A program made the position numbers and the translations under genes. Source: Bugula neritina (lineage: Eukaryota > Animalia > Bryozoa). From it: a stretch of 64,000 nt of DNA. Location: the NCBI GenBank assembly GCA_964035545.1, contig OZ037765.1:806001-870000 (forward strand), written 5' to 3'. This document shows positions 14,335 to 62,033 of the stretch, one piece after another (position 1 is the first letter of the stretch; each line of letters begins with the position of its first letter). The notes beneath the pieces were generated by a model, which was not told where the DNA came from, searched no databases, and worked only from the letters and a program-made list of their open reading frames with translations.

Positions 14335-16770
14335 TCATTGATTACTCCACAGAAGTAGTATTGGTAAGACTAGGATAGCCAGAGAACTTGTGATCTGTAC
14401 AGAGTTTGATACTCTCCACTCCACATCCAAAGATTCGCCTAAACACAATGACAAAATATTCTCAACAAGTTAATTTGGGGAAGTTTGTAAGTATAAAACT
14501 GCAGCACTAGAAACGTTATGGTTGGTTAGAAGAATGTCAGAGATTCAATGCAATATATAATAGTGATTTGCCATAGTGTGAAGTTATATTAGGAGAGGTG
14601 TAAGAGACACATTTTATCTAGCAATGAGGCTCTTCACTCTAAATTATAGCTCGTAATCAAACAACGGTTTATGTTAAGAAGCATGAAGAGTTAAAACTTG
14701 GGAAAAGTTAGCTATTGACCTTATTATAGCTATGTATAATTGGTCTAATTGCTATAGGTTGACAAAGTGAAATTTATCTTAAAATATTTCCCTACAGCAG
14801 CCACCACCCTGCCACTCATACCATAATGAATAGCTTTAGTAAAGAGACGAAGCTTTTTAGCAACAACAAGCTGGAAGAAGGTCTATTAGTAGGCCCTATT
14901 ATTTGCTATAAAATACTAATAACAAACTGGTAATACACATTTTTTAATTGCTATAAGTTATAAATTGTTCAATAATAAAATAATGAAGACCAAAACTACT
15001 TACCAAAAATATCGTATGCTGTACATTGTATAATTGTGATACCATAGCCAACATCCTTAACTTGTAGTAAGTATGTACTCGATCCATTCTGTACCTTTGA
15101 ACCTCTTTTCCAGGAGAACCTAGATGGTGGTGGTCGGCTGTCTACATGTTCACCACAGTCTAGCTCTTTCTGTTCTGAGCCTTGCAGAGTAATATTTTGT
15201 CTACTCTCTCCATTATACATAATATTATCTGTTGAGTATAAATATGTATAAAATTCAAACAGTATGAGCAATGTCAGTTAAAATCAAACTGGAGATAGAA
15301 AAATAGAGAGAAAGTTCAACTTCTGCGATAACCTAGCTTAATATTAAATACACTAATATAGCTTTTTTAAGAAACTACAATAAGCTCTAAAAGCTGTTAA
15401 AATAATTTCTTTACTAATTTTATCGGTGGATTATTACTCACAGTTTGGAAAGATTTGCTGAGAAAGTTTGGCACCTGGTGTACTAAGACCAAAGTTTTTG
15501 TTGTAACATTGAATACTAAATCCATCTTTATCTCTGGGTTGTATTACGTAAGTTCCAACATTACTCAAACTGTCACCTCTCCCATTGATGCCCACAGCTA
15601 CCCCATCGTGCTTTATTACTTCTAAAAAATTATTAGAAAAATAACCTTTTTGTCTTGTATACAATGTGCCTATTTATAGCATTATGGGAATCTAAGAGAA
15701 AACATGTAGCTATTTTAGGCACTTTAAATCAAAAATAAAACAAATGCATTTTAATATTTTGGCATATAATTATATTGTACCAAATAATGGTTATATTATT
15801 ATAAAACTATATTCGTTGTACTTACCATACTGGTATGGAGCAATAGGACCATCATTAGTACACTCTATTCGCATAAAATCTCCTACTTTGAGTTCTTTTG
15901 GTAGGTAAGAAATGGTCAACCCAGTTGGCACAGAACCTAAACATATCAGCAGTAAATATCAATTGCAGAGTTTTGGTATATATTCATGGCAATATAATAA
16001 TATCACAGATATTGCAGTGTATCACAAACCTTGAGAGCTGGTAGAGGTTATACAGCACATCAGTATACAGATTAGGAAGGAGAAATATCTTCTCCTAAAA
16101 CATATTAATATATATAATGTTTGTTTATTAAATATTTATTATACTCATACATTGTGTTTCGTAAACAATTAACTGCAGCATATATAACATCGATTTATTT
16201 TGCTCTAAAGTTTGACTATGTAACTTAGATATCAAATTGTTTAGCATTTGACATCAACGCTTCTTCATAACTGCTACCTTATTGGTATACTATTTTATGT
16301 GTACTAATATATATAATATCAAGTTATAGCCACTAATTGTAATATCAATGTTGTAGTAAAATCTGCAATTAACTGTTGTTATTCAAAACATTACATTGCA
16401 GCTGCATCCTTCCCTCATGTTTTTACCTAACTAAGAGCAGTTACTCTATTTCACAGTATAGTTGGCAGATTGTTATTATTTTTCTCAATTTATAAGTAGC
16501 TTTTATCATTATGAAGCACAAAAAATAAATTTGAACTTTGAAGACAAACTATATAGTAAAATACTTTTAAACAAAGCCATCAATTAGTGATAACTATAAT
16601 TGTATCATTGCTGTAATTGGGCCTAAAGACTTCACGTAGTTTTAATCAGAGTTATGTCATGATAGTGCATTAAAGTTTGATCCTATAATAATAAGACTAC
16701 TTATATAGTATATATGAGAAACTAAGCTATCTAAAATGACTTATTAGAAGTCACCATACCTGACTGCCAT
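14335..16770 (-). CDS. Paralogue P7: predicted GPI-anchored protein with 2 Ig-like domains (about 231 aa), NGRGDS motif
   Basis: Exons 16770-16760, 16094-16030, A 15936-15826, B 15621-15442, C 15228-15004, terminal G 14438-14335 ([34 protein letters not shown]). Frame is open. Confidence 0.82.

Positions 16771-62033: not shown

Follow-up and report, generated by a model that had tools for sequence, protein, structure and literature searches.

A conserved RGDS motif, possibly an integrin-recognition site, in a tandem cluster of immunoglobulin-like genes of the bryozoan Bugula neritina

Results

We analyzed a 64,000-nucleotide (nt) stretch of the genome of the bryozoan Bugula neritina (assembly GCA_964035545.1, contig OZ037765.1, forward-strand positions 806,001 to 870,000), referred to here as the window, which contains a cluster of genes for immunoglobulin (Ig)-like proteins, several of which carry the tetrapeptide Arg-Gly-Asp-Ser (RGDS) in one exon, exon B. 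From a tblastn map of every exon type, together with splice-site reading, we found eight tandem genes, P1 to P8, all on the minus strand and bounded by leader and tail positions. The eight-gene parse of the original prediction was thus upheld, with a leader exon before exon A of P2 to P7, of the first exon set of P8 (P8a), and of the neighboring gene U9, and with a stop-bearing tail exon after every gene. The repeated Ig gene unit of that prediction also stands, but the unit is larger than had been described, as most genes have a second split Ig domain (exons A' and B') and a fourth Ig exon. The exon order per unit is leader exon 2, A, B, C, A', B', D, and tail; P1 to P5 encode four Ig domains, P6 and P7 encode two, with C spliced straight to the tail, and P8 encodes six. 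All introns are GT-AG, and all are in phase 1 except the phase 2 intron ahead of the leader exon. A Dscam- or protocadherin-type alternative-exon array was also considered and was rejected because each unit has its own leader and its own stop-bearing tail.

Exon B of five genes encodes GRGDS, in every case on the minus strand and directly preceded by Ile-Asn. The motif lies at 61123..61137 in P1, where its codons are GGG AGA GGT GAC AGT, and translation places it at 48446..48460 in P2, 42022..42036 in P3, 20260..20274 in P6, and 15569..15583 in P7. These are the sites at which it had been predicted, and the other copies also read as claimed, with ING-VDDVDS in P4 and P5 and ING-GGAN and ING-GGVN in the two copies of P8. 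While all five carriers read GRGDS, the window holds four independent carriers rather than five because P2 and P3 are near-identical recent duplicates.

When an exon-B profile made from nine copies was run against the 216-Mb assembly, it gave 12 matches, all within positions 805349-875739 of this contig (C1): nine in the window, one to its left, in U9, and two in divergent genes to its right. The cluster therefore comprises about twelve genes. U9 is a four-Ig gene that adjoins the window on the left and reads I-N-G-R-D-N-S. The two right-hand members (L027:1559-8791, equivalent to G000:C1:871559-878791) have neither I-N-G nor RGD; they are outgroups and mark the edge of the cluster. With the D exon as query, the genome search returned the same cluster and, on contigs C9 and C2, a few further hits that were weak, at 29-41% identity and E of about 1e-4. 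Beyond this genome, an exhaustive profile search of 1.84 billion representative proteins yielded two true relatives. A further six exon-B and three exon-B' fragments were recovered from 5.8 billion clusters by word-based searching. Every one of these relatives is an open frame of exon size, and they come from two JGI samples and two SRA runs. The metagenome contigs that hold relatives are labeled AY690838, an accession cited in the Bugula neritina mitochondrial genome paper (PMC2678162). Because these contigs are collinear with P6 and P5, with about 78-83% identity through introns, we take them to be the orthologous loci of a related species, which we call sp2. Judged by these searches, the genes form an undescribed Ig-like family that is lineage restricted, at the level of the genus Bugula.

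The original prediction had proposed a survey of further family members, and we found RGDS kept in sp2-P2/3 and sp2-P6, in addition to P1, P2, P3, P6, and P7, and changed in U9, in sp2-P4 and sp2-P5, and in two U9-like genes of sp2. The altered states differ by lineage: sp2-P4 and sp2-P5 have VGDS and P4 and P5 have VDDV, P8a and the second copy in P8 (P8b) have a one-residue deletion followed by GGA or GGV, U9 has RDNS, and the U9-like genes of sp2 have KDNS and KNSS. In the U9 lineage of both species (exon B at L025:9349-9522, left of the window, and at L021:1038-1214 and L023:1070-1243), the position of RGDS is now an N-glycosylation sequon, D-N-S-T or N-S-S-T. The motif stretch as a whole is hypervariable and tolerant of insertions and deletions, and it is flanked by invariant anchors, I-N-G upstream and N-x-G-x-Y downstream. 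The codons AGA GGT are identical across all carriers, while synonymous variants occur within the conserved block (GGG/GGC/GGA, GAC/GAT, and AGT/AGC, with GAT for Asp in sp2-P6).

To place these states in a history, we used a tree of exon C, which does not include the motif. Its backbone is unresolved, and it contains five clades (P1; P2/P3; P6/P7; P4/P5; and P8 with U9), with P4 and P5 each paired with its own sp2 orthologue. In the exon B tree, P4 and P5 of this genome group together instead, from which we infer that VDDV was spread by gene conversion and represents one event. The non-carriers keep complementary parts of the motif, R in U9 and G-D-S in sp2-P4 and sp2-P5, which makes an ancestral RGDS in the P1-U9 group the simplest history. 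RGDS is thus best read from these sequences as ancestral, kept in three old clades (P1, P2/P3, and P6/P7), and decayed in two, the simplest order of decay in the P4/P5 lineage being VGDS and then VDDV. The idea that the motif is switched on or off among paralogues did not hold, since the partial states indicate one ancestral RGDS, two or three independent losses, and no regain. Exon-scale gene conversion is also seen in P6/P7, where the synonymous divergence (dS) is 0.13 in exon C and 0.88 in exon B.

We then compared amino acid changes, as Fitch parsimony counts on exon B, at the four motif sites and at the other 55 sites in the carrier and non-carrier subtrees. The motif sites show 0 changes in carriers and 12 in non-carriers, while 81 of the 152 changes (53%) counted at the remaining 55 sites belong to carriers. 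The chance that none of the 12 changes would land in carriers is 1e-4, or 5e-4 to 2e-3 once the 2-4 changes that define non-carrier clades are removed. Had the four sites changed as fast as the flanks, carriers should show about 11 changes there, and none was observed. The strong divergence of the flanks that had been noted is also confirmed, with the ten variable flanking positions averaging 2.8 parsimony changes per site in carriers and R-G-D-S none. Carrier paralogues are saturated at synonymous sites (exon B dS of 0.7 to >2), and a conversion tract could span about 21 nt at most, given that the codons flanking I-N-G-R-G-D-S diverge heavily. The 0 versus 12 changes, the saturated dS, the synonymous variants within the block, and the diverged flanks together argue that the constraint acts on the protein and is specific to carriers. 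By these counts, RGDS has been kept by selection in carriers, to which the conserved motif probably matters, and once it is broken the four sites evolve like their flanks.

The genes as a whole also appear constrained. The ratio of nonsynonymous to synonymous divergence (dN/dS) between orthologues is 0.2-0.4 across exons A to C in 4 of 5 pairs, at dS of 0.17-0.42, and it is 0.2-0.35 for P4 and P5, whose motif is lost; the exception is exon B of U9, with a dN/dS of 1.4. Positive selection on the motif flanks was considered and is not supported (pN/pS of 0.54 at these sites).

Exon A encodes the first Cys and exon B the second (in D-K-D-G-F-T-I-R-C, a D-x-G-x-[YF]-x-C type motif), so exons A and B make up one split Ig-like domain. 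Exons C and D are single-exon Ig-like domains with the C...W...C pattern, and the hallmark residues of Ig domains, including the Cys residues of strands B and F, are therefore present across these exons. Exon A' begins with a Thr-rich segment, and A' and B' form a domain paralogous to that of A and B. Profile methods recognized these domains poorly. In a Pfam scan of all exon types, the best Ig match was Ig_3 to exon D, at 19.3 bits versus a cutoff of 30, and exons A, B, and C gave no Ig match; all these exons are single, highly divergent domains or half-domains. A PDB sequence profile search returned spurious picornavirus VP4 matches only, none with an E below 0.015, no significant alignment came from comparing the profile of exon B with those of exons C and D, and the look-alikes of exon B in the ESM Atlas were unnamed viral clusters only, with recognition below a useful level.

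Exon B encodes an Ig-like half-domain, in which the motif is located between the E strand and the predicted C/C' region. When exon B alone was folded from a 16-row alignment, the model contained an F-G hairpin and had a mean predicted local distance difference test (pLDDT) score of 71. The sequence from I-N-G to N-x-G-x-Y has a deletion in P8, is three residues shorter in exon B', and holds the sequon in the U9 lineage. Because the motif stretch takes a deletion, a shortening, and a glycosylation sequon, we tentatively favor a surface loop at this position.

The leader exon is 65 nt long and signal-peptide-like, in which a basic R-R precedes the hydrophobic core and the end is polar (S/T). The donor reads CAAG/GTTTGT, and an (AT)n microsatellite always comes next, in the short intron before exon A. 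Leader exons are 88-94% identical among paralogues and 86-91% identical between species, which is above both the Ig exons and the intron level. In the tail exon, what is probably the last beta strand leads into V-S-N-S and a spacer, and the frame then closes with 13-15 hydrophobic residues and a stop. Judged by inspection and hydropathy, all eight tails resemble glycosylphosphatidylinositol (GPI) signals, with V-S-N-S or S-A-S followed by 8-10 residues, 13-15 hydrophobic residues, 2-4 polar residues, and the stop. The membrane tether that had been proposed is thus plausible, with a GPI-signal-like tail on every gene and a signal-peptide-like leader exon, and the products are probably secreted, lipid-anchored surface proteins.

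The individual gene models, all on the minus strand, are as follows. P1 (four Ig domains) spans 51312..62034 on the tblastn map, with exon A at 61930-62034, B at 60996-61175, C at 60595-60846, A' at 55176-55430, B' at 54585-54737, D at 54152-54433, and the stop-bearing tail at 51312-51446; unlike in P2 to P8, no leader exon was found for P1. The four-Ig gene P2 (44462..49662) has leader exon 2 at 49598-49662, A at 48846-48998, B at 48319-48498, C at 47492-47809, A' at 46734-46868, B' at 46040-46192, D at 45268-45628, and the tail at 44462-44590. Its near-identical duplicate P3 (four Ig domains; 36764..42832) has the leader at 42768-42832, A at 42419-42580, B at 41895-42074, C at 41073-41390, A' at 39384-39497, B' at 38330-38482, D at 37557-37919, and the tail at 36764-36892. 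The two carriers of the short, two-Ig form are P6 (18146..21296; leader at 21232-21296, A at 20569-20691, B at 20133-20312, C at 19705-19989, and tail at 18146-18253), in which A', B', and D exons are absent between C and the tail, and P7 (14335..16094; leader at 16030-16094, A at 15804-15946, B at 15442-15621, C at 14990-15250, and tail at 14335-14436).

Among the genes without RGDS, the four-Ig gene P4, whose motif has decayed to VDDV, spans 30105..35100, with the leader at 35036-35100, A at 34388-34636, B at 34038-34217, C at 33192-33449, A' at 31959-32124, B' at 31221-31373, D at 30775-31092, and the tail at 30105-30233. P5 (four Ig domains, VDDV) spans 22271..28204, with the leader at 28140-28204, A at 27566-27708, B at 26102-26281, C at 25780-26031, A' at 23464-23718, B' at 23063-23215, D at 22540-22827, and the tail at 22271-22384. 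The six-Ig gene P8 (2414..13124), which has no RGD, contains an internal A-B-C duplication with both sets in frame and in series: its leader is at 13060-13124, the first set has A at 12652-12794, B at 11073-11249, and C at 9698-10060, the second set has A at 8053-8175, B at 5476-5652, and C at 4872-5226, and these are followed by A' at 4202-4355, B' at 3080-3232, D at 2691-2951, and the tail at 2414-2542. Neither a leader nor a tail was found between its two A-B-C sets. Leader exon 2 of the next gene, U9, lies at 534..598 (minus strand), and the Ig exons of U9, with the RDNS motif, are just left of the window.

The G+C content of the window is 31%, microsatellites are abundant, and several introns contain mobile elements or tandem arrays. 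A long terminal repeat-type retroelement occupies 55823-59860 (plus strand) in the C-to-A' intron of P1, with a 1044-residue open frame at 56194-59325; its two ends (55823-55951 and 59732-59860) are formed by tandem arrays of 27 nt that are identical to each other. A mariner-type transposase fragment lies at 39686-40261 (minus strand) in an intron of P3 (Pfam Transposase_1, E = 4e-21). Carrying these two elements, the window is recognizable as animal DNA. At 61522-61940, the intron after exon A of P1 opens with about 28 tandem 15-nt units (…TATGGTAAGTTGTAG…), each of which includes the final bases of exon A and the GTAAGT donor; the first donor alone keeps the frame open. Tandem arrays of a 31-nt unit run from the 3' end of the A' exon into the intron at 4114-4268 in P8, 23375-23499 in P5, 31709-32025 in P4, and 46570-46769 in P2. 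This unit resembles the end of the A' exon plus its donor (…ACTTAC.GTAAGT…), and splice-donor-containing repeats thus recur in the cluster.

Discussion

Our best explanation, which we hold tentatively and at somewhat under an even chance, is that RGDS is a selected integrin-recognition site on a GPI-anchored Ig protein, by analogy with known ligands. The anatomy, the restricted distribution, the constraint on the motif, and its release are shown by the data. On the simplest history, RGDS was already present in the ancestor of the P1-U9 genes, and purifying selection has kept it in three old clades and both sampled species. In two other clades, a single hit broke the motif, after which its four sites drifted as fast as their flanks and, in one lineage, became an N-glycosylation sequon. 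As a putative binding site on the membrane-distal Ig domain, RGDS would have as its candidate partner most likely an RGD-recognizing integrin, on another cell or in cis, and the copies without RGD would have lost integrin contact while keeping or gaining other specificities. A receptor would be available because the genome encodes integrin beta subunits, found at two loci; a Pfam search of the genome for integrin alpha gave no signal anywhere, and its controls were silent too. Human L1 binds integrins through its sixth Ig domain (Ig6) in an RGD-dependent manner (PMC2132622), and RGD peptides bind oyster integrins and hemocytes (PMC7390872).

The constraint data would be identical, and are silent on the partner, if RGDS were selected for a role other than integrin binding. 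That role could lie in loop structure, through an Arg-Asp salt bridge or a turn after N-G, or in contact with a partner other than an integrin, for instance in a homophilic interface or with a ligand from microbes or matrix, with the non-carriers having compensated or changed partner. We regard this as a distinctly possible alternative, if one on the doubtful side. The motif lies directly on the invariant scaffold residues (I-N-G and N-x-G-x-Y), and the Ser after RGD is as invariant as RGD itself in carriers, although integrin binding needs no Ser. However, a purely structural role fits poorly with four sites that tolerate full replacement, a deletion, and a sequon while the rest of the gene stays under purifying selection. 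The all-or-none pattern, with quick drift at all four sites once a single hit has occurred, is the behavior expected of a short linear binding motif. A motif with no function at all, an ancestral accident kept through shared ancestry or short-tract gene conversion, would be compatible with the conversion that is active in the cluster (the different groupings of P4 and P5 in exons B and C, and the P6-P7 dS of 0.13 versus 0.88) and with AGA GGT codons that are the same in all carriers. We consider it unlikely, since conversion of a tract of about 21 nt or less would need to have happened repeatedly, across three clades and two species, synonymous variants lie inside the block in paralogues that are synonymously saturated, and no change is seen where the flank rate predicts about 11.

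Several observations weigh against the integrin reading or the steps on which it depends. In the half-domain model of exon B, the first 20 residues, including the motif, are coil of low confidence (pLDDT of 52-55) and thus uninformative as to exposure, and the invariant N-G could be a tight turn that leaves R-G-D in a short edge strand. The flanking sites are relaxed and give no sign of a positively selected "code." The constraint test is partly post hoc, carriers being defined by the motif, and RGD tripeptides are common by chance, so that a single ancestral occurrence is unremarkable; for this reason, and because P2 and P3 are recent duplicates, only the retention of the motif counts as evidence. 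In addition, a search for a first coding exon with an ATG and a hydrophobic segment found none, protein collections held no spliced, full-length protein of the family, and the only sequencing run found to hold the stretch, when RNA evidence for the locus was sought, is DNA. The last three results would also suit an array that is largely dead DNA, made up of unexpressed duplicates or pseudogenes whose motif states have no present-day meaning, as would the transposons within P1 and P3 introns and the elevated dN/dS of U9 exon B. We think this very improbable, given that all exons are open, with canonical splice sites intact and consistent phase, that dN/dS is low across exons A to C in 4 of 5 orthologue pairs, and that conservation of the leader exon between species exceeds that of the introns.

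Known integrin ligands offer several points of comparison with the integrin reading. The closest likeness is to the sixth Ig domain of L1CAM, which also has an RGD within an Ig-like domain of a surface protein of the Ig superfamily (IgSF) and is a heterophilic integrin site at which mutation of the motif abolishes binding (PMC2132622). L1CAM differs in being transmembrane, with six Ig and five fibronectin type III (FN3) domains and a conserved cytoplasmic tail, and in having its RGD in a membrane-proximal Ig domain, right after the C-strand Trp. The Bugula family has no FN3 domain and no transmembrane tail, ends in a GPI-type signal, and has its motif in the distal domain, and Pfam, protein, and PDB profile searches detected no sequence relationship between the two. 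The G-R-G-D-S pentapeptide is identical to that of the tenth FN3 repeat of fibronectin. Fibronectin is a secreted matrix protein that presents GRGDS on the F-G loop of an FN3 domain, and the Pfam scan gave no FN3 family match in any exon; on sequence grounds, the five shared residues reflect coincidence or convergence rather than homology.

Another comparison is with Thy-1/CD90 and ICAM, VCAM, and MAdCAM, small surface proteins of the IgSF whose N-terminal Ig domain offers integrins a short acidic motif; Thy-1 is GPI anchored and uses the RGD-like RLD. These are vertebrate families with other motifs (RLD, IDS, and LDT), and no sequence similarity to them was detected. We infer that the Bugula family may be a functional analogue of this group; as to type, it would join, as a new member, those IgSF surface proteins on which a short integrin motif is displayed. 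A broader idea, that the cluster is a recognition set of a colonial animal, providing an adhesion or opsonin code for immunity, fusion/rejection, or larval settlement, strikes us as quite unlikely. In such a set, RGD-bearing two-Ig and four-Ig GPI-anchored forms would engage integrins on coelomocytes or neighboring zooids, the hypervariable residues around RGDS would tune integrin choice or affinity, and RGD-less and glycan-masked paralogues would be non-adhesive variants or variants of alternative specificity.

The general impact of these findings is moderate, as they concern one small family in one genus. To our knowledge, almost nothing has been described at the molecular level of bryozoan immunity, colony fusion, or cell adhesion. 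The natural mutant series in this family (RGDS, VGDS, VDDV, deletion, and glycan sequon) offers a test bed for asking whether lophotrochozoan integrins read RGD on Ig ligands. If the motif does not bind integrins, the family would be a clean case of a conserved RGD that is no integrin site, and if it does, the family would be a new invertebrate counterpart of the L1/Thy-1-type IgSF integrin ligands.

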